From Pelomyxa schiedti (lineage: Eukaryota; Protista; Evosea): a stretch of DNA of 64,000 bases. The notes below the pieces were generated by a model that saw only the letters and a program-made list of their open reading frames with translations, had not been told where the DNA came from and did no database searches. This document shows positions 1 through 19,900 of this stretch, piece after piece. Numbering within the stretch: position 1 is the first letter of the stretch; each line of letters begins with the position of its first letter. Made by a program: the position numbers and the translations under genes. The stretch covers positions 19,056 to 83,055 of the forward strand of contig JAHLWZ010000351.1 of the NCBI GenBank assembly GCA_020536535.1. The letters are read 5' to 3'.

Positions 1-3000
1 ATTTGTCTTGTTGTCATAACTTCCATCACATCCTATGCAAGAGGAGTTTCCATTGCAAATACCACACGCATCATATTCCTCCATTGAATTTGGAACTCCT
101 GGCAACTGCGGTTTAGTACTGGAGGGAAAAGTACATTCCAAACTCTCTTACCATCACATCCCATGCAGGTAGAATTGTTGCCGCCGCAAATTCCGCAGGC
201 ATCCCACTGTTTCCCACTCCATAGTTTTGTGTCACAACCGATACAGGCGATGCCATCTCCACCACACACGCCGCATTGGTCATATGTCATTCCAGACCAG
301 GCAGTCCCATCACATCCAACGCACATATTATCTCCTCCGCAGACATTGCACCTGTTGCGGAGGGACCACAGGAGGAATTAGTCCAAAGGAATCGGAAAAG
401 CTTTCACATACAAGTCATATTCAGCGCCGGACCAAGCAATGAAATCACAGCCGAAGCAGAGATTGGTCTCGTTTGCCGTTAGGGGACAGTTTCCACACAA
501 ATCATACTGAAGATTCCCAGGTTTTCCGTCACAACCTAGGCATTGATTTGTGCCACCACATATTCCACATTTATCAACTATCTTGAAGTGACTTGTAAGT
601 GAGAAATCATACAGTTATTTCGGACATACAAGCATTGAAAATGGTACGAAGTCACAACCGAGACATGTGTTGTTTCCAAGGCACACGCCACATTGATCAT
701 ACTGGCTTCCAGACCATGGTACATTATCACAGCCTAGACATTCGTTGTCTCCACCACATACAAAACAGCTTAATCAGAAATTTAGACACAGAACAAGTGG
801 GAAAAGGGATTATCAGGCATATACCGGTCGTATTTCTTGTTTGAGAATGGAACATAATCACAACCATAGCATGTATTGTTACCGCCACAGACTCCGCATT
901 TATCATAGGGAAGATTTCCAGGTAGTCCATCACAGCCAATGCATTGATTTGAACCACCACAGATTCCACATTTATCCTCAACCTGTTCAAATGCTTAATC
1001 TAGTCGAAGGTATGGAATGGAAGCCGTACCACCCCTGAAAATGGTACATAATCACAACCCAAACAGGTATTGTTCCCTGCGCAAACGCCACAGAAATCAT
1101 AAGTCTGATAGGAGAATGGTACGTCGTCACATCCTACACACTCATTGGTCCCTCCACATACTCCGCACCTGAAACTCTAATTCAGACAAGGCTGAGGAGA
1201 AAAAACGATACTTATCAATAGCCTTGCCAGAAAAAGGAATGTAATCACATCCCAGGCAATCGTTCATGTATGTAGGGTCATCAGTGCAGTTTCCACACTC
1301 ATCGTAAGCAAGGTTTCCTGGAAGTCCATCACATCCAATGCACTCGTTGGAGCCCCCACATATGCTGCATTTATCAACCACCTAGCTTTTTGTAAGGTAC
1401 AAAAAAATACTGAAATTCGTTGACACACCAAGCCAGAGAAGGGCACATTATCACAACCAAGGCAACTGTTGTTTCCAGCGCAGACACCACACTGGTCATA
1501 AGTCAGTGCGCTTGGTTTTCCATCACAGCCGAAGCACGAATTATGTCCACCACATTCACCACATTGGTCAACGGTTACATTTGAAAAAGGCTTTCCATCA
1601 CACTGCACACAAGAATCATTTCCTGAGCAGATGCCACACTAACGGAGGAAATGAGAAGAAAAAGAAGATAGTCACCTACAAACCTGATCATAAACTTTCC
1701 CACTGAAGCAAACACCATCACAGCCAAAGGCTCGGTCCTCTCCACCACATATTCCACAGTCATCCAGAACTTTTCACCTTTAGTTTTAACATAAAGAGAA
1801 AACAGGATACCCTTCCCACTGAACGGAACTTTGTCACAGCCCCAGCAGGCATTCGTCCCATCACAGACTCCGCACTGGATTTAATTTAGAAAAAGATTAT
1901 AGATCAAAGAAAGAACCTCACCTCATCGTACTGTCTTCCAGAGTTTAGTATACCATCACATCCCATGCAGGATCTATTGAACTTTCAGATGGGAAAACTG
2001 AAAAAAAGAAAGAGCAGTACGAGCCATTGCCTCCACAGACTCCACAGACATCAAATTGAATAGGATCCCAGATGACTCCATTGCACCCAAAGCATGCCCT
2101 ATTTCCACCACAGATTCCACAAACGTCGTAAGTCTTTCCACTGTAAAGAACGCCATCACAGCCCACACAAGCATCAGTGCCAAGGCAAACATCACATTTG
2201 TCCACTTGTGCTCCACTCCACGGTTTTCCGTCACAGCCGATGCACGCAAGCTCGGATGGATTATTCGTGCAGTCACCACATCTAACATAGGACACAATTT
2301 CAGTGGAGGTGAAAGAGAGAAAAAGGAGAGAAACGTGTCATAAAACCAGCCAGAATTTGCTACGCCATCACATCCAACACAATCTTTTCAGGGTAAATAA
2401 GAGTAACCAGAATTAGTTAGAATTATGCACCATTTGCGCCTTGACAAACACCGCATTTGTCAACTGTTGCTAGTGACCAAGGGATCCCTGCAAGAATATG
2501 AATGGGAGCATATACAGTAAGAAAAAGATGTACCATCACATCCAACACAAGAGAGACCAGTTCCACCACACAGTCCACACTGGTCATACTGACGACCTGA
2601 GTATGCAACATGATCGCACCCAAAGCAAGAGTTCTGCACATACAGGTTGTTAATCTCGCCGCCAGTCATAATGGAAGTTACTTACATTTCCGTGGCAAAC
2701 AGAACAGTTATCGTACACGGCCCCACTAAACGCCACGTTGTCACACCCCACACAGTCGTTCATTTCAACATCGCCTGGTTGAACGCATTGACCGCATCGG
2801 TCATACACATATGGCCCATAAGGAATTCCCATGCAATCCTCGCATGCGTTTGTACCCTGGCATACAGCTATGACATTTGATTGTTGTTTATTTTTGAGCG
2901 AGTGAGTTCACCATGGGGCGACAAATAAAGAAGCATACAGCAGTTGTCAAATGTAGCGTGGGACCACTTGATGCCATTGCACCCCAAGCATTCCAGGCCC

Positions 3001-5835
3001 GAACCACCACAAACACCGCACTGGTCATATGTCAACGGGGGGACAGTAGCACGCCCATCGCAGCCAATGCACCTTGATGTGTAGGTTTGGGTGTAAGAGT
3101 CAATAAGTTGCCAGGCTATACATTTACACTAGTACTACACAAACAGCCACAGCAAATAAAGGCACTTTTCCCACAAACGTACTTGTTTGTTCCGTTGCAC
3201 ACTCCGCACTTGTCCCAGCTTGCCTTCCCATAAGGCGTTCCGAAGCAATCAATGCACGACGTGCCGTTTCCCCCGCACACACCGCACTGGTCGTACTAGC
3301 AGACAAAGTTAGTGGTGAAGATCAGGATCAAGAAGAAGATCGATCGTGCAGGAAACACATACGGCGGCAGGGGGCACTGTGTAAAGGTAGTCACATCCCA
3401 TGCACGCGTTGGTTCCACCACATACTCCGCAGTTGTCATTATGCTTGTTGCCATACGGAACCTGCTGGCAATCCAAACCTGATTGGTGAATGTGAGTGTT
3501 CTATGTGGAAGCCAACTGTGTGTGGCATCTACTTACTACTAGTACTAGTAGTAAGTAGGACTGGGTGGCTACATACAGGCGTTTGTGCCGTTGCAGACTC
3601 CGCACAGGTCGTACCTGTTGTGTGACTGGTTGGTGATGGGAATACAGAATGATGAATGGGGGATCACATTGCCATGACTGGGGTTCCAAAGCATCCGTAG
3701 CACGTGGAATTGTCGCCGCCGCACACTCCACATGCATCCACTTTGGCGTGGCCATTCAGGTTTCCGTAGCAATCCAGGCACGATGTCCCTGAGCCTCCAC
3801 ATATTCCGCATATATCCACCACTCTGATGTTCAAAAAAGGAGGAGTTGCAGTTAACTCTTAACTGTCAGAAGCTTATTTACTCACGTTATTCCGTAAGGA
3901 ACACCCTTGCAATCCAAACATTGATTCGAATCCGCCAGTGTAACGCATATCTGACACTTGTCCATAATTTTCCCAGAGTTCACAACATGGTCGCAACCTT
4001 CGATTCCTCAGAATTATTCTATGATACATTATTTGCTTACCGTAACAGGGGAATACACTATCCACTACAATGGTTGCAACACCCCATCCAAGGACATTCA
4101 AGTAAATCGTTGTATTATGTACGGCAGTTCTATGGCAATGTAAGTACTAAGGTCATGTTTTCTAAGGCTACGTTGCAAGTAATTTCACATTGAAGATGTA
4201 GGTATTGTAGGGCGTTACACTTGTGTAAGTGGATGGAGAGATTGACTGGACATAGCCGTATGTATCTGTAGCAACCACCATCTGAAGAGTGTTACTAATA
4301 AAACCTGGTGTAAGTAACTTACAGTTAGTGTTGAAGCAAGCACACTAAGACCCTGCAAGATATAGGGGACAACATTGGAGCTATCTGATGCGATCAAAAA
4401 CACATTCCCGTAGCTACATCAAAACGTTAGAAAAGCTGATTCCCTTGAGGACTGAATTACCCAAATGAAGTGATCAAAGAATTATACTGACTCATCACTG
4501 AGGTAGTATAGGAACCTCCATCGTTGATAATTCCAAACACAGGGTATATGTTTGCGCCCTTGATGTGTGTAGTGAGAGTCGCCACAGAAGGATAGTCTTC
4601 GCCTTATGTACATGTAAGTGCACCCGAAAAAAAAACCTGAAGTACCTGTGCCATAATACTGGCATTGATTAACTGTATTGCCAGCTGCATCTAAAATTAC
4701 ACCTACAGGATAGCACGGCGGAGTCATGCAATCATCCACGCAATCATAGTTATTTGCTGGTAAATAGGCGAGAGATGTCTGTCCACTAGCAGCTTGACAT
4801 TGATATTTGTTCTCTTGTGCATAATGGAAGTTGGCATCCGTTATTGTGAAAAACATCTAATAGGCAAAGGTAAGTTTTACAAGTGAGCACACTGACGGAC
4901 CTTCAGGGAATTTGTTCTCCAGCCATACTTCCCCTGCATGTTGCAAGTTGCCTGCGCAAGCGGAACAAGTTGTGACTCGGGTCCATCATAGCCCCATCCA
5001 ATCACAGTTTCCTGAGCGCTTATTAGTTCAAGCCGAAGAGGATGGAATGTGCTTACTGCCACTTTCGCCTGCAAGGCATTGTAACTATTCTGCAGGGGTG
5101 CTAGGGCCCAGAAGTCATTATCTACTGCTGCCATAGAACCCCAATCCCCTGAGTACAGGACCGGCTTGTCTCCAAACGTGTTGTAGGCAAAATTGGCCTG
5201 AGGCCTAGAACTCCGGACTTGTGATATGATCCGCGGAATAAGCATGGCAACCATTTGTACATCTGGTGTCATACTGCCCGTGATATCCTGTTTCCTGGTG
5301 ATTTGAAATGCCATCTTTTGGGAAAGAACCTGACTGATCCAAAGATCAAGAGACTGCAGCTCAGAAGGTGGTACATAAACACTGATTGGAACCGTAAGAG
5401 CTTGATTAGGCACAAGAAAAACTTCTGTTATTGCTGGATTGATCTATGTGGCGTTGGGATTACGGTCATAAGGCATAGTAACAGGAACGAACAGGTGAGC
5501 CCGTTGTGTTCCACACAATCTGACTTTGTTGGTACCACCAAGTTCCATTTGAACAAGACCCAGAAGAAGGCCCTGAATTCCACATCAGGAAACAAAACAG
5601 ACGCAGAAAAACCAATCCAGCACAGAGTCAGATAGACATACACACCTGATGCAGTTCCAGCCATGCACTTTCCAGTTCCAGTGCACCACCCACACCCAGT
5701 CGTGGCCACGCAGGAAGTGCACACTCCGTATGTGCACGCTCCCAGCACCCCCACGGCTGCTCCCATAATTACAACTACAACCATCGCCGTAACCGCCATC
5801 GTAACCGACAAGGGTATCGCCCTCTGTGTAGGCAT
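1..5835 (-). CDS. Integrin-beta-like surface protein: signal peptide, PSI domain, betaI/VWA domain, hybrid-like segment, long Cys-rich repeat stalk; multi-exon, 3' end outside the window
   Basis: ATG at 5835 starts a hydrophobic leader (MAVTAMVVVVIMGAAVGVLGA) followed by PSI-like CTSCVATTGCGWC. After removing short GT-AG introns, integrin-beta motifs occur in order: LDLWISQ|DITGSM (5270-5287), FGDKP, YDGPES, GWR..TDANFHYA, EDYPSV, SDSSNVV. Cys-rich repeats continue to position 1 with no stop or TM segment seen. Confidence 0.8.
33..3900 (-). repeat. Array of about 30 protein-level repeats CxGCDGxxxSGxxYDxCGVCGG inside the integrin-beta-like gene
   Basis: Readable in minus-strand ORFs 33-326, 1142-1381, 1264-1608, 1945-2295, 2460-2669 and 2650-2832, and in exons between them; the count is by eye. 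Confidence 0.85.
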
Positions 5836-6110
5836 GCCCTGTGCTTGTTCTGGAATCAAATCGAGTCGTTGGTTTTTTTGTTTGTTTTCCTTTTATTTTT
5901 TTTTTTTGTGTGCATGTACACAACGTTAGTTCCACAACGGGGATGAGCGGAAAAGCGTTAACTAAGTTCGGTACGATTCCATTCTTTTTCTTCCATCCGC
6001 ATCTGGAATGCAAATCCAGATCGACGTTTCTGTACCTCTCGTGAAAACGGACGTGCACTACACACAAAAAAACCTGGTGTGAAGAACAAAAAAAAAACGA
6101 AACAAACCAC

Positions 6111-9100
6111 ATGGCAAAGGGTAGGGGCACAAAGTTATACTATTCAACGTAGTGGTTAACATTAGTAAAACAAGAAGCGTTTCGACTTGTATTTGTGGTT
6201 CTGTGTGCAACATGCACTGTTGGCCTTCTGCCGTCTATATTCCTTGAGGCTGAGTATTGGACGTCGGCAGGTTCGTGGTCAAGAACTACTTCCACATCGG
6301 AGTGGGACTCTTGCGGCCAGTATATCTACACAACGACAAACGGCGGAACGGCGGTGACATACACTTTTTCCGTTTCACAGTAAGTGGGAGAATTTTCTGT
6401 TATGACACGTTGGTAAGCTTCACACCTCTCAAGAGCTGGAACATACAATTTGTGGATACTTTCGAGAATTCCAAACAATCCGAAGGGTGCCTCACTCTGG
6501 GTTCAGTTTGATTCGGTGAGTAAATGAGTCCTTTCCTCCAGTTTTTGACTGTTCTCTTTTCAAGCAACCCAAAGTTGACTGGGACTTGTATATTTTTGGG
6601 AACTCTTGGAGGCAAGTCACAAATGTAACTCTATCGACTGGGAGCCATACTCTTGCCATCACAATGAGGTAAATGGGTTACAAAGAATACCATTCTTAAC
6701 TTGGTTCAGAAAGTACTCTGCTCAGCTTCAAATGGATAAGATTCTGATCACGGATATGTCCACTCCCAAGATGGGTTACTCAAACAAAGGAAAGACAGCA
6801 GCTAATATTCCCTCTGGCTCTTATTGTATTGTCCCCTCATTTCTTCATCCCAAGCCCTAATATGTATTTCAGGTCAGCAAGTATATTTAGAAGTATGTCG
6901 ACTCGAAATTGTTGCCCCCTATTATCTATCTGAACAACCACACAGGCGGAATTTGGGACAAACCCCGGATCACCTGTCACATTAGCAGGGCTTTCAACTG
7001 CCTCCATGTCCGGGGCACTGTACAAAAACGCAGCAACAACCACCACTTGCAGCACTTCGTCCAATTACGTACAGGTAATTTTTGCTCCACTTGTGACATC
7101 ACTAACGAATATTTAGTTCACAGTGACTTGGGGTGAGTCTGTGTACAGGCCTGTTTGGTTCAGGGTCATGGCCCCTACGTCGTCGTACAATCAGTTCACA
7201 ATTTATGTGTGTAGGCAACACCATTTTGCAAGTCTACACTGAGTCTCACCACAGAGCACAAATTGCGGAACGAATTATGGCACTCTGACTGTCTCCAAAC
7301 CTTCACAAGAGTTTCAATGGGTCAACGTGCGTCCCCTCCTCTCCCAATTTCTGTATTGACGACGTGCAATGACTTTCTCGTCCAGTTTGGATCCCTTATC
7401 AACCTGCCCAACTCGTTCCTGGTGACGTTCGTCACAGGGTACACCTACCTCGACAAAATCTACATCGGTTGGGGAATTCCGCTCACCAACGGCTCCATCG
7501 CCAACCTCCCATCATCAAGTATGGATATTCCTCGAAAGACCATCACACAACGCAACTTTTTTTTGACGAAACGACAGGTTCTTCTTGTAGCACGTACAAT
7601 GGACTGTGCTCTCCCGTAACCACATGCAGCGCAGGGCCAACGTGCTCTGCTTGTCCCGTGGGCTATCAAGGCTGTGGCAACATCAACACCTGCAATCCGC
7701 CTTATGGGTGCGTCCGCACGGTGCCGTTCGGCTGCTACTTTGACAGAAGCGTGTCACAATTTGGCTATACCGACGTTGCTTCGTTCCCGACTGGCGCGAG
7801 CACGGTTGAATTATGGGCGTCGGCTGCGCCCTTCCTGGCGACTGGGGATTCATCTGTTATCTACTATCAGAGCTCCAGTGGGTCTTGGGTGTACCAAATT
7901 CGATACAATCCAAGTCTGGGTCTATATTTGTGTGTTATTTATTTCCCCATTCCAAGATCCATTTCCCTTTGGTTTTTTCAGTTTTTACTGTTTTACTGAG
8001 ATTTTTTGCTTGGTTGTGTTACTGTTGTTGATGAATTCAAGGTACAATGGTGGAACTGCAATTAAGCCATCAACTCCAATCATTCTTCCTTTGGATATCT
8101 GGACACATATTGCCGTGCGTTGCTCCATCTCACCATTGTATTGCGCCTGATGTGCGTTTTTTGGGCAGATAACCTATGACCTCTCCACAGCAAAGTTTTA
8201 TGCGAATGGAGCTTTGGTCGCCACTGTTAGCACAAGTTCTGGTGCTCCGTCCTCTCCTGGTGTGATATCCTTGGGGAAGCCAGTTGGTGTGCCTTCATTC
8301 GTGTTTCCTCGAAAAACTTGATTTCTTACCTATACATCAAGCCACATGGTCAACAGACTTGACTCTACCTGCTTTTGGAATTGATGAACTGCGTATCTGG
8401 TCTGCAGTGCTCCCTCAAGCAACAATCCAACAAAATATGAATCATACACTCACAACAAGTCAGCCTAATCTAATGCGTATGTGATTACTCCTCCCAAGCT
8501 ACATATAGAACTCTAACCCAACAAACAATAAAAAAAAAGATGTTTGGAGTTTTGGTGCCGATAATAGTAACCCTTGTCAACCAATAACCACTGAAACTTT
8601 TGGAACTGCAGCAATTACAACTTCACTCACAGAGTGTATGCAAGTTGAAGTTTACCTTTTTTTGATCTGAAAACAGGGTATTCTCTGCGAAATCTCTATA
8701 TATCCACTGGCGGGCCAAATTGGAACATGCAAACCAGTTGGTTAATTGGCCAACCATGCAGCGGGGCAAATCCTGTATGGTTTGGAATTGACTGCGATAC
8801 ATCAGGGAGTGGCCGCATTTCGACAATGTAAGTAGTATCTGTGGAACAAGCGGGAATCTATGAATCTACCCACAATCCCAATAGAAACCTCGCCTACAAC
8901 AATTTGGTTGGATCCTTACCTGCCAGCTTCTTTGCACCTTTTTCCAAGCTTTCTATTTTGTATAAAATATCATACCTCTCCCTTCATCTAATTAACTTTA
9001 AAACAGAATGCTGGATGATAATTCATTGACTGGACCCATCCCAATGGATATTGGCTTTCTCACAAGTGCTGTTACAATGTACGTACGGGGTTCAGTTCCA

Positions 9101-12100
9101 AACTTTTCTGATGACATTTGTAGATTAATGCACAGCAACCAATTTACCTCGATCCCAACGCAGATTTCACAAATGACATCTTTGCAAAAATTGTACTTTC
9201 TTCTGTCTTTTCTATCTTTTCTCATTACTCACTGTTTTAGGTACTTGCAATACAATCAGCTGTCGGGAACTATTCCAGATGTCTTTTCGACAATGACAGC
9301 ACTGGTTTTTCTGTATATGTACAACAATTCTTTGACAGGAACAATTCCAACTTCATTGAGCACCATCACATCCCTGAAATACCTGTAAGTTTTTGTTTTT
9401 TACATCCCCCTGGTTTTGCTAAAGCAACAATCACAGAGATTTGAGCTACAACCATCTTTCTGGTCAATTTCCACAGGCAATTATCAATAGCCAAATATCT
9501 TCCATGTAAATACTATGCCTTCATTTCACTTCGCAATAATCAAATATCCATAAGAAATGTTGCAGGAAACTACTTTTCTGGTCAGTTGCCCAACAGAGCC
9601 ACAACTGTCAATTCCCAAATGATTTTAATGTACAGTTTCCACTTGGCTGTTATGTATATTAACAATGGATACCACCACAGGAACTTCACAGACAATGTGT
9701 TTACTTGTGAAGTGCCACCCTTCTTCACATTGTCTTCCACAACATTCCCTGTCGATGTTCACGGCAGTCTCTTCTTTTGTCCCATAACCAATGTTGTGCA
9801 GACCATTCAAGGGATTGCTTGCCGTATGTTCTCCCATGATGATCTTTTCGTTCTGAGCATAACTTTCAGAACCTGTTACAATGATATCTATTACACCCAA
9901 CAGTTGGGACTTGTCAGTTGGTTTTGGATCCAAGCCCACTGCCACAATCAATGCAACAGGCCTGAACGGGTGCACAGGAATACAAATATTTGTCCCTGGT
10001 GTTGGGCTAGTTGCACCAAAAAGTCAAACAACAAACACGCTGGTGTTTTCAATTCCCTCTCACACTTATGGGATTGTTCCCATCCGGCTCGTGTGGACCG
10101 GCACCTACGGCAACAACTCTGTGGTGTCAGCCAACTCACTCAACTTCAAGTACTATTATCCTTGCCCAGCCTCGTGTGTGTCTCCATATGGGTCCTGTGC
10201 TGGACTGAGCGGCCTTTGTGTTTGTAATGGAACACATGGAGGTTATACTTTGCCAACAGTGACGTAACACTCACAGAACATAGGGTCTGACTGCCATGGT
10301 TGGTCATGCCCCGCAAACTGCAACGGGCGAGGGACATGCAACACAACAACTGGAGTTTGTATTTGCACCCCGCCTTATTTTGGCACCTCGTGCAGTGCAG
10401 CTCAAATTGCCTGCCCAAACAACTGTTCCAAGTAAATTTCCGTCCAAAACAGTATCTTTAGAGTTGTAATACTTCCCCTTGAAGGCACGGGCAGTGCAAT
10501 ATTTTCACAGGGGTATGCTCTTGTTATCTTGGTTACTGGGGAAACAACTGTGCGAACAAAACATGTCCCCCAAACAACCTTCCCTACTGCACTCCACCAC
10601 ACGGCTGGTGCAATGGCACTTCTGGGAAATGTGTTTGCGCATCTGGTTGGCTTGGAGCTTCTTGCTCAACACCTGCGAAATCATGCCCTGCCAACTGCAC
10701 CAATCCAAACTATGGACAGTGCAACCCATCCACTGGTATGCTTCAAATTAGAAATTAGTTTGTCTCTTTACTTATCAATTCAAAACAAATCAAACAGGGG
10801 AATGCACGTGCTTCACATATCAAGGGCTTATCCACGGTGGGCTCAACTGTAGTCAAATCATTTGCTCTCCTTCCTGCTTGAATGGTGGCACATGCAACAC
10901 ATCTTCCAGCAAGTGCATTTGCAAACCTAACTACTATGGGACTGATTGCTCCGTGCCCAACTTTCCTTGTCCAAAGAATTGCACCAGTTCCAGCAGTGGC
11001 GAGTGTAATTCTCAAACAGGCAATTGCTCTTGCCGCTCAGGCCTGACGGTAATCACATACAAAGTATTCCCGTCCCTTCAAATTAACTCACCTCGTTCAC
11101 AGGGCTCAGATTGCTCCATTCACATTTGTCCTGGCACTCCTCAGTGCAACTCCCCAAATGGAACCTGCAACACAACTGATGGAACGTGCATATGTAGCAG
11201 CTTTCCAAGCAAAGGATACTACTTCAATGGGTATATGTGTCAGTACAAATACTATTACTGCCCGGGCAGCCCTGAATGCAGCGGTAGCACTCATGGCAGT
11301 TGCAATCCTCAAACTGGAAACTGCATGTGTAACTACCCTTGGACTGCTTCTCTAAATTGTTCGAGTGCTGTCTGTCCCAATAGCTGCTGGGGGCACGGTT
11401 CGACTTCAAAAATCCCTTTCTGTATGTCTTGAGCGGTTTACAGTTTGCAGGTACATGCAATTCTGCCAACGGAAAGTGCATCTGTTGGGAACAGTACAAC
11501 ACCACAGTTGACTGCGAGTTGCTCTACAGTGTGTATTGAACTTTTTCGTCCCAATAATTCTCACCTCCCTTCACTGCACTTCACTTCACTTTACGATGGT
11601 CCAGTTCCATGTTCCCAACCGTGCAACCATGGTTACTGTAATACACAGACTGGAATCTGTGTTTGCACATCACCATGGACCAGCACAACATTGGAGCAGT
11701 GCAACACTCTGTCTTGTCCTGGAGACTGTAATGGAGGAGTTACTGGGACTTGCGTGAATGGCACCTGCATCTGTCATACAGGCATTCCAAACCCTGATGT
11801 AATCACATTTCCATTCTTAACCTCGAAACAGGATGGACTGGTACTCAGTGCACCATTCAGAACTTGACATGTGCTGGAGATTGCAGTCCCCCTTATGGAC
11901 GGTTTGTTGCTCCCTGCACCAGCACCTCCGAGTGCGTCGTTGACTTATACTCAGGTGTGACACAACAACAGGACTCTGTGGGTGTTACGGTTCTAGCTAT
12001 GGTTCCAATTGCCAATACAGTATGACACTCACGTCCCATTTATATGAAGCTTCTCACGGAATTGCTAGAATACTGTCTCAGTAACTGTAGTACCCATGGC

Positions 12101-15100
12101 ACCTGTAATATTACGACTGGTGTGTGCAATTGCTCTTCTGGGTGGCAACCACCGGATTGTTTTGCAAACTTGTGCTCTGATCTGAATTTCTGCACCTCAA
12201 GCTACAACGGAAATTGCAACACTACGAGCGGTGTTTGTGTGTGCAACAGTGAGTTCTATGGCTTGGAGTGTCAGTACAAGTCGTGTCCTGCAAACTGCTC
12301 ATTCCATGGCGTGTGCAATAATGCAACGTTTGTTTCGACGTTAAAGTGGTTGGGTTGTAACACTCACTCAAACATTAGGGGATTGTGCTCCTGCTATTCA
12401 GACTACCTTGGCGCCGTATTATTATCCCCTCTTGAGTTCTTCCATTTTCTCAGTTTATTCAGATATGTGACGAGTTCTCTGCTGTTTGCCCACCATCTCG
12501 TTCTAACGGGTGTTTTGGAAACGGTGTGTGCAACCACACAACAGGGATGTGCACGTGCTATCCTGGTTTCTTTGGTGCTGAATGCAATTACAGTGTGCAA
12601 AAGTTTTAATAAAAACCTCCTCAGTAACCTCGGCACAGCATACTGCCCAAACAACTGCTCTGGCCACGGAGCGTGCAACTACACAAGTGGTGTTTGCTCT
12701 TGTGCTCAGAATTACTCGGATCCCAGCAATCCAGCTTGCAGTGCTGTTTACTATGCCTGCCCGTATGTTCTTTCATGGCGGCTGGGGGTTGAATTAATCT
12801 TCGGGCAGGGATAACCTTTGCTCGGGGAATGGTTATTGCAAGCACTCCACTGGTCAGTGCGAATGCTACTCCGGTTTCCACGGGAACGTATGTCAGTACA
12901 AGAAGTGCCCTGCAAACTGTTTGGAGCATGGATCGTGTAACGCGGTATGCCAACCATGAAATCATCTCTGCTGTTCTGTTCTGATTTTGGGGGCAGACAA
13001 CCGGGGAATGTGTGTGCCAGCCACATTGGCTTGGAGTTTCTTGCTTGGAAGCCAACTGTAAGTTATCTCGTTCTGAGACTTCTTGTTTATCAACTCTTCC
13101 GGCAGATTCGTGCCCCGGCAATTGCTTTGGGACTCATGGATATTGTGATAAACTGACTGGTCAATGCACATGTTACCAACCCTTTTTGGCTCCTAACTGC
13201 CAGTATGGTACGTTCCCACAACCGTGCAATGTATTATTCTAAAGAAAACGATGAAAGCAACCTGCCTTTTCAACTGTTCCTATCCACATGGTGTCTGCAA
13301 CAAGTGAGTCGTCCATGATGGATTTTTTATTTCCTTCCATAAGAATCCTTATGAATTACTCTTATAGTTTGACTGGCGTGTGTGCATGCAACAGTTCATT
13401 TGCTGGAAAGGGTTGCCAGATCGCTAACTTCACGTGCCACCCAAGTTGCATCAATGGAAATTGCTATTCACTGTATGAGTTTTTGCCAATCAACCCAGAA
13501 AGCACCAACAAAATCCCTTCTTTTATTAGGACTGGACAATGCATATGCAATGCAATGTATTATGGTCAGGCATGCCAGTACAAGCAATGCCCTGGGAAAA
13601 CTCCTTGTTCTGGAAACGGTGTATGCAACAACACCACTGGTGTTTGTGACTGCTCCACCAACTTCACAGGAGTTTCATGTGACATCCCAAACTGTATGCG
13701 CCAATAACACAAGACCCATTGCCGCCTCTCAAATTCGTTTGCACATAGACAAGTGCCCCAATAACTGCAGTGGTACACATGGACACTGTGACCCGAACAA
13801 AGGTCAATGCATCTGTTATTCTCCCTGGACTCTTCCAGACTGTCTTGAAGGTAAGAACTGGAGAAATATATAACTATCATCCACTCATTCGTTCTGGTTT
13901 AGGAAGTTGTCAGTTAAACTGTTCTTACCCGCACGGCGTTTGCAACACGTTTGTTTTCCTCGCTTACGTTACTTATTATGTGGTTACACCTTCATTTGTA
14001 TATTTAAACAGTTCGACGGCTGTTTGCACTTGTGCTCAGAATTATATTGGCAAAAGCTGTCAGATTGCCAACTTCACTTGCCACCCAGCGTGTCTGAATG
14101 GGACATGCAATACTCTGTGTGTAAAATACGCTGTTGTTCGTGGTTTTCATTGACCCCTTTGTGGCATAGGGTCGGAAAGTGCATATGCAATGGCGGGTAT
14201 TGGGGAGATATTTGCCAATATAAAACCTGTCCCACAAATTGCCAGATTCATGGAGTCTGCAACAACGTATTAAATACATTTTATGAGCATTTCTTCCTGC
14301 CAACTTGATACTCCAGTTCACTGGAATATGCCATTGCAGCCAGAATTGGACTGGTGCTAATTGCATGGAGGCAAACTGTATGTGATATCTCGAAAATCAA
14401 TGAGGCAACGCTCAAATGATGTCCATCTCTTCAGATTCTTGCCCGAAGAACTGCTATGGGTCCCGTGGGCATTGTGACGCGACATCTGGCAAATGTTCTT
14501 GCTATTCTCCATGGACTCTTCCCGCATGTGAATTTGGTACTTTTTCCTTTCCTTCCATCCATTCATTTCAACTCACGAGTGCCCACACATACATAAGCTA
14601 CCTGCACACTCAATTGCTCATATCCAAATGGGGTCTGTAACATGTATGCATTTATTATGATTTCGAGTATCTCCTTCTCTTACGCACAAACTCTTAAAGA
14701 CACACTGGAGTTTGCAAGTGTGAACCAGATTGGACAGGAAAAGGCTGTCAGATACTGAATCTGACATGCTCCCCTCCGTGTATAAATGGTGCTTGTGATT
14801 CAGGGTATGGATGGAATCTTTTTGCGTGACCAATTTTCTCTGACTTCATGCAGAACTGGAAAGTGTGTATGTCAAGCCGGGTACTTTGGGGACACCTGCT
14901 TGTACAAACAAGTGTGTTCGAGTTTTTTTTTACTGTTGGAATCTCCAACTCAACAGCTCACAGTGCGGAGGTAAAACCCCATGTTCCAGCCATGGTATAT
15001 GCAATAATCTCACTGGAACTTGTTCGTGTGATCCCCACTACGACGGGAACTACTGTGAAATTCCTGATTGTTTGTCAACGATTATCATCTCTCCATTGTC

Positions 15101-16051
15101 AGTTAATTTCTTTCAGTTCCTTGTCCTAATAACTGCACGAGTGCTTCCCGTGGATCCTGCAATACTCAAACAGTTAGTATAAACTGTGATTATCCCAACA
15201 TAACACACTTAACAGGGACAGTGCCTATGCCGCTATCCCTACTACGGAACAAACTGTTCGCTGAGTAAGGCTTCATTTCCTTTCCTTTTCCTGGCCGTTC
15301 CTAAAACTTTTCCAGTGAAATGTCCCAACAACTGCAGAGGGCATGGAATCTGCAATTCTACAAACGGTGTTTGTATCTGCAACTCTCCGTACCTGCCCCC
15401 GGATTGCTATTTCAGTTTGTATCCCGTTCTCCACCTTCCATTTTCCCATAACCACACACATTAAAATCAACCAGTGTCTTGCCCGCTTAATTGTTCTGGT
15501 CATGGAACCTGCAATCCATTCACCGGCAAATGCACGTGCAAACCCTCTACCGAGTGGACAGGGCTCAACTGTTCCATCAGTAACAAACTCCCCTCCTTTT
15601 CTCTCCCCTTATCTTAATGCATCTTGCATCTTCTATGACATTCATCATTACCATCCACACCCAACCCAACTGAGCACACTTTCGCACGCCAACACAACTT
15701 TCCCGCAGTCTGTTATCTACTATCTGATATCTACTAATATCCTCACCCACTCATTCACTCACAGGAGAGTGCCCCAACAGCTGCAGCAACGCAGGGAAGT
15801 GCAACCAAGCGACGGGCAAATGCAATTGCCACACGGGGGCCAAGGGCTCCGACTGCTCGGGCGAGAACTGGTGGATCATCGTCGTGTGCGCCGGAGGCGG
15901 CACGGCCCTCGTGGTCGGCGGCGCCACGGCCGGCTTCGTGGCGGTGCGCCAGATGCGGATCAACAACGCGCGGTCCAGGCGCGCCAAGAACTCCGCGAGC
16001 TACGTGGACATGGACCCCTTGTCTGCTAGCGGTGGGGCGGGCACTCATTGA
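6111..16051 (+). CDS. Giant type-I membrane protein: signal peptide, CBM-like beta-sandwich, LamG/ConA-like domain, plant-type LRRs, IPT/TIG-like domain, long tenascin/EGF-like array, TM helix, short tail
   Basis: ATG 6111 plus intron 6121-6177 gives MAKAFRLVFVVLCATCTVG. Motifs: LEAEY...DKILIT; VELWA, HIAVR, GIDELRIWS (LamG); NLAYNNLVGSLP, LDDNSLTGPIP, LQYNQLSGTIP, YNNSLTGTIP (LRR); dozens of CPxNCSxHGxCNxxTGxCxC units. Last exon encodes WWIIVVCAGGGTALVVGGATAGFVAV then RQMR..YVDM..TH-TGA (16049-16051). Confidence 0.8.
10160..15860 (+). repeat. Tenascin/EGF-like Cys-rich repeat array spread over many short exons
   Basis: Recurrent C-P-x2-C-x2-HG-x-C-N-x2-TG-x-C-x-C motifs in ORFs 10878-11432, 12044-12814, 13012-13242, 13288-13707 and in exons between them. 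Confidence 0.85.
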
Positions 16052-16906: not shown

Positions 16907-19900
16907 TTAGCTTTGCAGAATTCGTATTATTTTACTGATTGGGGGTCTCCCTTCAGACTCAAACACCCAACACTCACGCATCACTTCAAGTGCCCAGGGT
17001 GGGCATTCCCAGGCTTGGCCAGTGCAGTGCCATTCAGCCGTTTCTGGTGAATGTAGTAATTCATATGCCTGTTTGGAAAGTAGGTCAGCTCTTGCTTGCC
17101 GGATGGATTCTTGTTCATTCCCAGGTGTAGTGGTGCTTGAACCCGTTGATGCTGATGTTGCCGGCTGCTCAGGAGTTGGTGCTGGTGGTTGTGGTTGCAC
17201 GTGGCCGGCGGCTATGGCCGATTTTACGGCATCGCGCTTCATTTCGTAGCGTTCTGTGTGTGCAATGAGCTTGCAGTAGGTTCCGGACCTCCGCAGGTGA
17301 TCGTAGGGTTCTGTGAACGGGTCTACAATGCCGCGGCAGAGGGTACCGAAATTCCACACGTCGGTGCCTAAGTCACTTTGTGGTTGCATTCTACAGGTTT
17401 CTGGCGCCCACAGTTGAATTGGTAGGTCGCGCAGGAGGCATTCTTGCATTCCTGCACTGACTTGGATATCGGCGAGTCCAAAATCCGCAATCTGAGGGCC
17501 AGTGAGATAAATGTATGTAAAAGTGGTGGCCAGATTAACCTTGGCCCATGGTCCGGCTTCTTGGTTGAGTGAACATATAAATACATTTCCTGTGTAAACA
17601 GCGTGTTAGGGCACGTTGTCAAGAGAAAAGAGAAGGAAGAAACCAGGGTGCAAGTCGCTGTGCTTCAAAGGGGGCTTTTGGCTGTGCAGGTGGAAAAGAC
17701 CTTTGGCTGCATCCAAAAGAATCTTTTTCCTAAGTGACATTGGTAACACTACTTCCATCATTTCGCGTTTCATTGACAATATTTCTGAATCGCTGTATGG
17801 CAGTGGTGAAGATGGTATTGTGGCTCTCTTTACCATCTCTTCAATTTTATGTGAAATCCTTCTGAGAACTTTGCCGTACAAGTGGCTGAGATCTGGTCTG
17901 GTGAGTGATGTCACTCCAAGAAACAGATGCAAGCCTTCTGGAATGGTGGGGCGAACAAACTCCATATACATGGATATTGGAAGGAGGCTGACACCATAAA
18001 ACCGAACAATGTTTTCGTTCTTCTTAAGACTGCTCATGACTCTAGCCTCGTGGAGAAATTCGCCAAGATCGGAGCTGTTCCCAGAAGAAATGTGCGGAAT
18101 CTTGACAGCAATCATTTTACCCTTATACACAGCTCTCATTACTTTCCCGAAAGAGCCGGAGACGGATGAAATCTCTTTTCTCTTGCCAGAAGATGCGGAA
18201 AGAACAGAGTCAGCTGTCAAAGAGAAAGTTGGAGGGAAGGTGGAAGCTGGTGATTCACTTTGAATGGATACTGGGGAAATTGAGGCAATTGGCGCATCAT
18301 CCAGGCCACAGGTGATCTTCTCTGAAGTCAGATTTTCTGTCTCTTTGAAATTCGTGAACAATGTAACCTCTTTTGGGTCTATAATTGGAAGGCTCTCCAT
18401 GGCAATGTCTGGTGCTGCCGCAGAGACAGTGCCTGTATGCCCAAATTTGCAGTGTAAAGAGCCGCTAGAACATATGGCATCAACACACTCCCGTAAACTG
18501 AACAGATGTGTGGAATAATCCGTTGGGTTAAAAATGGATTCCATTATGGGATTCAGGGATGTTGTTGTTGAGTGTGAATGGTGAAGTAAATTGGTTCCCG
18601 TCATCAAGCAGCCGGGGCATGCGACCCATTCAACAGCTGCTTTCTTCATGGCAGAATTGCACATAGATAAAAAGCAATTGATTACACACACGATTTGAGT
18701 GATGAGCGGAACTGAAGAAGATGCTGGGGTCAGAAGAGTAGCAGTAGATTTCAGCATGTTGTTGGAGGTCTGTGCAGTCGCCACATCCAAGCCTCTTGGC
18801 AACTCAGATATCCAAACTTGAACAACAAGACATTTACTTTCCTTGTCTAGGGTGATAAGAGCCACGTGTTTCGCAGTTCCACACAGCAGACTGGCTGAGA
18901 GGTGTGACTTGCTCGCCTTAACTTCTTCGAGTTGCGGAATTCCCATTATGCGAATCTGTAACCTAAAGTATGATCAAAAAAAAACCTTAGAATCTCTTTG
19001 TTTAGAAACCTTGGAAAGAAGACAACCGGAATGAACTCAAACTTATATACTCTGCCTGCGATAGAAACAGGGGTAAAGCTCAGTACCGGAGCGGCAATAG
19101 GAGCCGCAGGGAGTCTTAAAGGTATTAAAACCCTCTGATTGTTCAATTTGTATGCTACTTCAAAACTGAGAAGCAACTGGAGCAAAGTCTCGTGCATTGA
19201 TTTATCACCAAACAACTTTTCATTGAATACATTATGAAGATCAGTCATCTTCAAAACGGCGTTGTCCTCCCAGGATGAAGAATCACAGTTGTTAACCACA
19301 GTTTTCACAATTTCCAGTATAAACTCGTGTCGCAGGACGACAATATCTGAGAGTGATTGGGTGATCCCTGTATGAATAAGATGACCACTTCTAAAGTGTA
19401 TAATCATCCCGCTATCGGCAAGGAAGTTGGCACAACTCAGAAGTTCCATTTCAAAGTTCTCCTTTTCATGCTGTGAGCAGGTAGAGCTTGCGCCACCACT
19501 TCCAATTCCATTAGCTGAGGCAATAGAGCTAAATTCACTCCATTGCAATATGTTGGTGTGACCACGAATTTCTCCAAGACTGTTGTAAAGTGCAACCCAC
19601 TTTGGCGGAACATGGATGGGCTTGATAATCCCCTCAATGTGTTGCGCCAACATGTCAATGCACTTAGCGGATGGCTGAACAAGGGGTTGATCAATCAGGC
19701 CGCCAGTGCCTTTGGATGTCATGGCAAAAATAGCAGAGAACTTGAAAGATGGAAATTTTTCAAACATAAGGCGACCGATATTTAGAAGTGCTTCAAAGGC
19801 GGATTTCCTGTCCTCTCCATATGATTCCAAGTGCGTGCCCATCAATATGACCTTTTCGTCATGTTGTTGTGAGGAGCGAACCTCTCGGATTTGCCTGACC

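Follow-up and report, generated by a model that had tools for sequence, protein, structure and literature searches.

Does the anaerobic archamoeba Pelomyxa schiedti carry a gene of the integrin-beta family which is hidden from ordinary domain scans by its short introns? This question is raised by contig JAHLWZ010000351.1 (assembly GCA_020536535.1), of which positions 19,056 to 83,055 of the forward strand, 64,000 nucleotides (nt) in total, form the window analysed here. An earlier note on this DNA had proposed that an integrin-beta-like head, made up of a PSI and a betaI domain, is encoded at positions 4200-5835 of the window. Our analysis leads us to the view that the minus strand from 5835 to 3886 very probably represents the 5' part of an archamoeba gene for a type I receptor, which combines a head of the integrin-beta family with a long stalk of DxCGxCGG motifs. 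The gene structure and the domain order can be read from the window itself, and the membership in the integrin-beta family is established via the relatives of the encoded protein, foremost the P. schiedti proteins KAH3744682.1 and KAH3759353.1.

Gene structure of the head

Translation of 5900-3800 in three frames together with direct reading of the DNA places all head motifs on the minus strand between 5835 and 3886. The motifs FGDKP, YDGPES..AQATC, GWR, TDANFHYA, DYPSV..IYPVFG and ASDSSNVV are all present there, in the order which the earlier note had given for them. The region consists of 11 exons and 10 introns. All ten introns start with GT, end with AG and restore the reading frame, and the eleven exons are open throughout. 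A signal-peptide-like N-terminus is followed by a PSI-like cysteine knot, by a hybrid domain into which the betaI domain is inserted, and by the first module of the stalk. The betaI exons contain the loops of three metal-binding sites, namely the metal-ion-dependent adhesion site (MIDAS), the synergistic metal-binding site (SyMBS) and the site adjacent to the MIDAS (ADMIDAS). In the following list, residue ranges and identities refer to KAH3744682.1 unless another protein is named.

5646-5835, minus strand: exon 1, with the ATG at 5835, a hydrophobic signal-peptide-like N-terminus and the first six PSI-like cysteines (aligned to residues 10-54)
5573-5645, minus strand: intron 1, 73 nt, GT..AG; KAH3744682.1 has an intron at the identical residue boundary (G|PSSGSC)
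5493-5572, minus strand: exon 2, seventh PSI cysteine and linker (residues 56-78, 16/23 identical)
5444-5492, minus strand: intron 2, 49 nt, GT..AG; holds the TAG that ends the open reading frame (ORF); position conserved in KAH3744682.1
5330-5443, minus strand: exon 3, strands from the N-terminal part of the hybrid domain, then the first betaI strand, LDLWISQ (residues 81-118, 20/38 identical; 24/38 identical to KAH3759353.1)
5288-5329, minus strand: intron 3, 42 nt, GT..AG, in frame and stop-free; KAH3744682.1 has a 48-nt intron there
5057-5287, minus strand: exon 4, MIDAS loop DITGS, remnant of the ADMIDAS (PD) and FGDKP with the SyMBS Asp (residues 119-193, 48/75 identical)
5012-5056, minus strand: intron 4, 45 nt, GTAAGC..CAG, in frame and stop-free; KAH3744682.1 has a 41-nt intron there
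4901-5011, minus strand: exon 5, Y-D-G-P-E (SyMBS/MIDAS loop), AQATC helix and GWR (residues 195-228)
4857-4900, minus strand: intron 5, 44 nt
4646-4856, minus strand: exon 6, ITDANFHYA with Asp as the fifth MIDAS residue, and a five-cysteine loop (residues 229-293, 32/65 identical)
4603-4645, minus strand: intron 6, 43 nt
4461-4602, minus strand: exon 7, EDYPSV..IYPVFG (residues 295-332); Pfam Integrin_beta with an expectation value (E) of 0.014 and 15.5 bits, covering profile positions 181-211 of 248
4414-4460, minus strand: intron 7, 47 nt
4323-4413, minus strand: exon 8, ASDSSNVV and last betaI helix (residues 335-363)
4282-4322, minus strand: intron 8, 41 nt, GTAAGT..CAG
4172-4281, minus strand: exon 9, C-terminal half of the hybrid domain (residues 365-403, 23/36 identical)
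4130-4171, minus strand: intron 9, 42 nt, set by comparison with KAH3744682.1
4041-4129, minus strand: exon 10, end of the hybrid domain, finishing FPCY (residues 405-433, 18/29 identical)
3998-4040, minus strand: intron 10, 43 nt
3886-3997, minus strand: exon 11, first stalk module (residues 435-470, 27/36 identical)

The proposed start of the feature at 5835 is thus kept, and its other end has to be moved from 4200 to about 4041, where the head finishes. The PSI-like cysteine motif which had been reported upstream of the betaI domain is also present, with a spacer of five residues instead of four (C-x2-C-x5-C-G-W-C). Over the whole of exon 1 the cysteines are spaced C-x4-C-x2-C-x5-C-x2-C-x5-C. 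The reading frame of exon 2 was chosen by tblastn with residues 48-78 of KAH3744682.1. Another position of intron 9, at 4188-4147, was discarded on comparison with the same protein, and 4171-4130 was adopted.

When the exons are aligned as separate rows to KAH3744682.1 they adjoin each other without surplus or missing residues, and the identity summed over the exons is 53%. Exon 7 carries seven residues (TTSVMSQ, 4490-4510, minus strand) which are absent from both P. schiedti paralogues and lie between the last two betaI helices. This segment has no GT..AG borders and is therefore probably a true insertion.

The two in-frame introns

Because introns 3 (5329-5288) and 4 (5056-5012) are in frame and free of stop codons, one open stretch of 181 codons (5443-4901) conceals three exons. 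The earlier note had removed the first of these introns, by which LDLWISQ is joined to DITGSM, and in this it was correct: in an alignment of the 181-residue stretch with seven homologues, all seven lack exactly the 14 residues encoded by this GT..AG segment. Its general picture of a gene fragmented by short introns holds as well, only that the second in-frame intron had been missed and that there are ten introns in all. In the same alignment KAH3744682.1 lacks exactly the 15 residues of 5056-5012, and the other six homologues show a gap of 10-13 columns at this place. The public gene of KAH3744682.1 (L001:10001-15382, GCA_020536535.1) contains 27 introns, which measure 41-66 nt; those in the head are found at the same residue boundaries as in the window, both in-frame ones included. 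The public annotation of P. schiedti was made with Augustus and refined by PASA/EVM on transcriptome data, and the genome is intron-dense, with 7.4 introns per gene, 98.4% of which are of the GT-AG type (PMC8887013).

One could still argue that the two segments of 42 and 45 nt are coding insertions which are kept in the protein, as both lengths are multiples of three, neither segment contains a stop codon, and the donor of the 42-nt segment is weak (GTTCTT). We regard this as barely conceivable. Both segments start with GT, end with AG and have sizes within the local intron range; the gaps of the homologues fall on them, with exact agreement in KAH3744682.1 at both sites and in the other six at the 42-nt site, and the annotated gene of KAH3744682.1 has introns exactly at both positions. 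Moreover, a retained insert of 14 residues would separate the MIDAS Asp from the first betaI strand. The splicing of all ten head introns is therefore supported by homology gaps and by the intron positions held in common with the annotated paralogue, that is, by comparison of sequences.

Assignment to the integrin-beta family

A HMMER search with the 181-residue stretch against 1.84 billion representatives gave 22 matches only. The best of them are the two P. schiedti proteins, KAH3744682.1 (P0001, E 6.7e-30) and KAH3759353.1 (P0002, E 5.5e-10), and a protein of Mastigamoeba balamuthi (P0006) is also among the matches. All three pass the Pfam family Integrin_beta (PF00362, cutoff 24.8 bits), with 76 bits for KAH3744682.1, 81.8 bits for KAH3759353.1 and 52.2 bits for the Mastigamoeba protein.

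A custom profile was built from non-Pelomyxa Integrin_beta relatives only and searched against all 1605 stop-to-stop segments in the six reading frames of the window. It matches four segments, all on the minus strand and in the order of the profile: 5443-4880 (E 1.8e-28), 4603-4460 (6e-8), 4418-4218 (0.013) and 4344-4171 (1e-4). No other meaningful match was obtained among the 1605 segments. Together with the E of 6.7e-30 for KAH3744682.1, this puts the similarity far outside what chance would give. The match to 5443-4880 is partly circular, because the relatives in the profile had been found with this very segment, while the other segments are independent.

The structural evidence comes from the head of the paralogue KAH3744682.1. 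A phmmer search of the PDB with this head returned 37 matches, all of them integrin beta, in an alignment which spans the betaI domain and both halves of the hybrid domain. In an AlphaFold2 model of residues 1-480, the part from 70 to 433 is confident, and beta strands lie on either side of the betaI domain. When this model was used in Foldseek, each of the 50 best PDB matches was an integrin beta chain (E 5e-26 to 8e-23, ~390-415 aligned columns). The insertion of the betaI domain into the hybrid domain is found in the window too: the betaI exons lie between exon 3 and exons 9-10, whose translations align with the one and the other half of the hybrid domain in KAH3744682.1 and in integrin beta-2. 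The claim of the earlier note that a true beta-integrin homologue is encoded here is therefore supported by relatives which score above the Integrin_beta threshold, and by the matches of the paralogue in sequence and fold to integrin beta alone.

A Sib-type or generic VWA adhesin, resembling integrin beta in a few motifs without being a member of the family, has to be considered as well. Indeed, the Sib family vWA_SIBA-E (PF24909) also matches KAH3744682.1 (38.9 bits), KAH3759353.1 (53.5 bits) and the Mastigamoeba protein (39.2 bits), one exon of the window gene has a weak match to VWA_4 (E 0.2), and neither I-EGF nor beta-tail domains are present. We nevertheless consider this reading very improbable. 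Integrin_beta is the top family of the extracellular head, above vWA_SIBA-E, in eight out of eight relatives scanned, so that the comparison of these families, which the earlier note had suggested as a check on the spliced protein, came out in favour of Integrin_beta for the natural full-length relatives. The generic VWA profile (PF00092) is reached by none of KAH3744682.1, KAH3759353.1 and P0006, the last of which has a sub-threshold VWA_4 match of 18.8 bits. All PDB matches in sequence and fold are integrin beta, including the hybrid halves around the betaI domain, and published amoebozoan integrin betas carry the same stalk motif (10.1101/2020.04.29.069435).

Metal-binding sites and points against the assignment

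For the metal sites we compared the window gene with residues in beta3 numbering, where we take the MIDAS to consist of the DxSxS motif, Glu E220 and Asp D251. According to the alignment the MIDAS of the window gene is complete: it comprises D-I-T-G-S, Glu from D-G-P-E and Asp from I-T-D-A. The middle Ser of the motif is replaced by Thr, as it is in KAH3744682.1, in the Mastigamoeba protein P0006 and in the homologue P0013.

Several observations weigh against an integrin-beta receptor. In the SyMBS the Asp of GDKP and the D-x-P-E motif are kept, and the Asn is changed to Gly; in the ADMIDAS one Asp of the D-D pair is replaced by Pro. Scanned exon by exon, the window gene stays below the Integrin_beta threshold, with 15.5 bits on exon 7 alone (cutoff 24.8), and the PSI profile matches exon 1 with E 4e-4 and 21.1 bits, below its cutoff of 23.1. 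The PSI part of the KAH3744682.1 model is poor, with a predicted local distance difference test (pLDDT) value under 50 for residues 1-66. The window gene runs off the start of the window, so the region in which a transmembrane helix and an NPxY tail would be expected lies beyond it. Finally, no alpha subunit was found, and no search aimed at FG-GAP alpha subunits was made.

Regarding the PSI domain, the PSI_integrin profile gives E 0.66 on the window gene, and seven cysteines stand in PSI-like spacing. The two largest exons have no Pfam match in the exon-by-exon scan, and a phmmer search of the PDB with a 129-residue stretch gave no match. The weak Pfam scores of single exons and the empty PDB search arise because the second in-frame intron lies inside the stretch and the exons are short. 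That the gene would be concealed at ORF level, as had been anticipated, is borne out by the lack of Pfam matches for the main exons when they are scanned singly. More generally, introns of 41-49 nt, some of which are in frame and stop-free, defeat domain scans at the level of ORFs as well as of exons.

The altered metal sites could also indicate a silent or decaying extra copy, a pseudogene within the integrin-beta family of P. schiedti, particularly as one ADMIDAS and one SyMBS residue are lost and neither protein search returned an identical protein. We hold this to be highly unlikely, since the head exons are open without exception, every head intron keeps GT-AG and the frame, the cysteine-rich motif remains regular up to the window edge, and the divergent neighbour gene is kept too. 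Furthermore, in amoebozoan integrin betas the MIDAS and SyMBS are conserved and the ADMIDAS is variable (Kang et al., 10.1101/2020.04.29.069435).

Concerning the two protein searches, no product identical to the window gene was found by HMMER among the 1.84 billion representatives, nor among the proteins of 752-2394 residues which share words with the KAH3744682.1 head. The window gene may thus be missing from the annotation or wrongly modelled there. With it, this anaerobic archamoeba gains a further and apparently unannotated copy of the integrin-beta family. The annotated copies are themselves misleading: GenBank lists both KAH3744682.1 and KAH3759353.1 as 'exocyst complex subunit 4', a name which is contradicted by the Pfam and PDB results.

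Stalk, membrane anchor and cytoplasmic tail

The first stalk module in exon 11 is followed by the remaining stalk:

1-3885, minus strand: stalk, at least 25 further copies of DxCGxCGGx3-6CxGC beyond exon 11, continuing past the window start

A regular-expression count gives at least 26 copies of DxCGxCGGx3-6CxGC from 3956 down to 66, and this is the published stalk motif of amoebozoan integrin betas (10.1101/2020.04.29.069435). No match to an EGF domain was found in the stalk. Its modules give weak to moderate matches to the last ~30 positions of the Pfam family ADAMTS_CR_3, a segment of the CGVCGGDNSTC type, with a best E of 3.4e-6 (27.5 bits). This points to a small disulfide module common to the stalk motif of amoebozoans and the cysteine-rich segment of ADAMTS proteins.

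The transmembrane helix and NPxY tail, which according to the earlier note should be looked for, are present in both P. schiedti paralogues: KAH3744682.1 has a transmembrane helix at 1292-1317 and an NPIY tail, and KAH3759353.1 has a helix at 1191-1218 followed by NPVY and NPNF. The public model of KAH3759353.1 (L002:10001-19296), with 2194 residues, goes on after the integrin beta to a second transmembrane helix (1742-1765) and a PDEase_I domain (1940-2170). Probably two adjoining genes have been merged in this model; a fusion of receptor and phosphodiesterase is less likely.

From these parts a mode of action can be sketched. The MIDAS of the betaI domain (D-x-T-x-S with Glu and Asp) would hold a divalent cation, to which the ligand would bind through an acidic group, probably with support from the partly kept SyMBS and with a weakened ADMIDAS. 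The long, presumably rigid stalk would project the head from the membrane, and, by analogy with the P. schiedti paralogue, a transmembrane helix and NPxY tail may couple the receptor to the actin cytoskeleton via talin-like adaptors.

The head-to-head neighbour

A giant gene with LamG3, LRR and EGF_TEN domains lies head to head with the integrin-beta gene at all three loci examined, i.e. at 6195-16050 (plus strand) in the window, at L001:738-9533 (minus strand) and at L002:1480-9557 (minus strand). In the window the two genes are separated by the following region:

5836-6194, no strand assigned: short divergent spacer upstream of both the integrin-beta gene and the LamG-LRR-EGF giant

The corresponding spacers measure ~440-470 base pairs in L001 and L002, and over the three loci the range is roughly 300-470 base pairs, with the start codon of the window neighbour not fixed. 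An alignment of the three intergenic regions revealed T- and A-rich tracts only and no convincing common motif. The neighbours in the window and in L001 are collinear, their amino-acid identity being 50-80%. The one in the window is a LamG-LRR-EGF protein and not an alpha subunit. An ORF described as 'tenascin' is adjacent to ITGB in Mastigamoeba (Kang et al., 10.1101/2020.04.29.069435).

One might go further and regard the integrin-beta gene and the LamG-LRR-EGF giant as a conserved two-gene module at three Pelomyxa loci, and possibly also in Mastigamoeba, in which the giant would be an obligate partner, either as a cis-ligand or as a stand-in for the alpha subunit, with both genes sharing a bidirectional promoter. 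This is speculative, and in our opinion rather unlikely in this full form. The repeated pairing is nevertheless the most useful lead from this locus, as it could indicate an extracellular partner of amoebal integrins.

Comparison with known systems

Within P. schiedti, the head of the window gene is 53% identical to that of KAH3744682.1 and ~40% to that of KAH3759353.1. All three share the intron positions, the type of stalk and the divergent LamG-LRR-EGF neighbour. The two paralogues differ from the window gene in that they occupy separate loci and are diverged to the level of paralogues; when compared with L001 and L002 by blastn, the window shows similarity at this level only. Judged by the sequence, P. 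schiedti is the probable source of the window, since it supplies the best protein matches and agrees in GC (guanine-cytosine) content (0.46) and intron style. At one ADMIDAS position the window gene carries Pro, and where it retains D-x-P-E, KAH3744682.1 has D-x-E-E.

Compared with the metazoan integrin betas (beta1, beta2, beta3), the window gene has the same head topology, with a PSI-like knot, a hybrid domain and an inserted betaI domain, and the MIDAS, SyMBS and ADMIDAS loops follow in the same order. It differs from them by an identity of only ~16-21%, by the lack of an I-EGF stalk and a beta-tail domain, and by its DxTxS version of the MIDAS motif.

The Dictyostelium Sib proteins (vWA_SIBA-E, PF24909) resemble it in their VWA-type head and repeat stalk and, going by the P. 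schiedti paralogues, in their NPxY tails, and account for the secondary Pfam matches on the P. schiedti paralogues. In contrast, their family scores below Integrin_beta in every relative scanned, and the repeats of the Sib stalk are of another kind than those of the amoebozoan integrin-beta stalk. Some bacterial or metagenomic proteins (P0016 with RTX repeats, P0021) likewise have a betaI-like domain that passes PF00362, but they are distant (E about 1e-4), have neither introns nor a CGxCGG stalk, and are combined with other partner domains.

The closest known system is the amoebozoan 'Type I' integrin beta of Kang et al., which has a PSI domain where the window gene has a PSI-like knot, and shares with it the betaI/vWA head, a conserved MIDAS, a variable ADMIDAS, the DxCGxCGGx3-6CxGC stalk and spliceosomal introns. 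These authors (10.1101/2020.04.29.069435; also Curr Biol 2021) found ITGB in 19 out of 113 amoebozoan data sets and, with introns, in the Mastigamoeba genome; the combination of this stalk repeat with NPxY tails was reported for integrin betas of 19 taxa, the sister genus Mastigamoeba among them. They give 3-7 stalk motifs, whereas with a loose pattern we count at least 26 in the window gene, 29 in KAH3744682.1 and 26 in the Mastigamoeba protein P0006, a difference which is not firm because the counting rules differ. Pelomyxa integrins are mentioned neither in the text of this preprint (10.1101/2020.04.29.069435) nor in the P. schiedti genome paper (PMC8887013). As amoebozoan integrin betas were already reported in 2020-21, the window gene therefore adds a member to a known family, and the picture drawn by Kang et al., in which integrin beta is older than the animals and occurs in Amoebozoa (10.1101/2020.04.29.069435), is unchanged by it.

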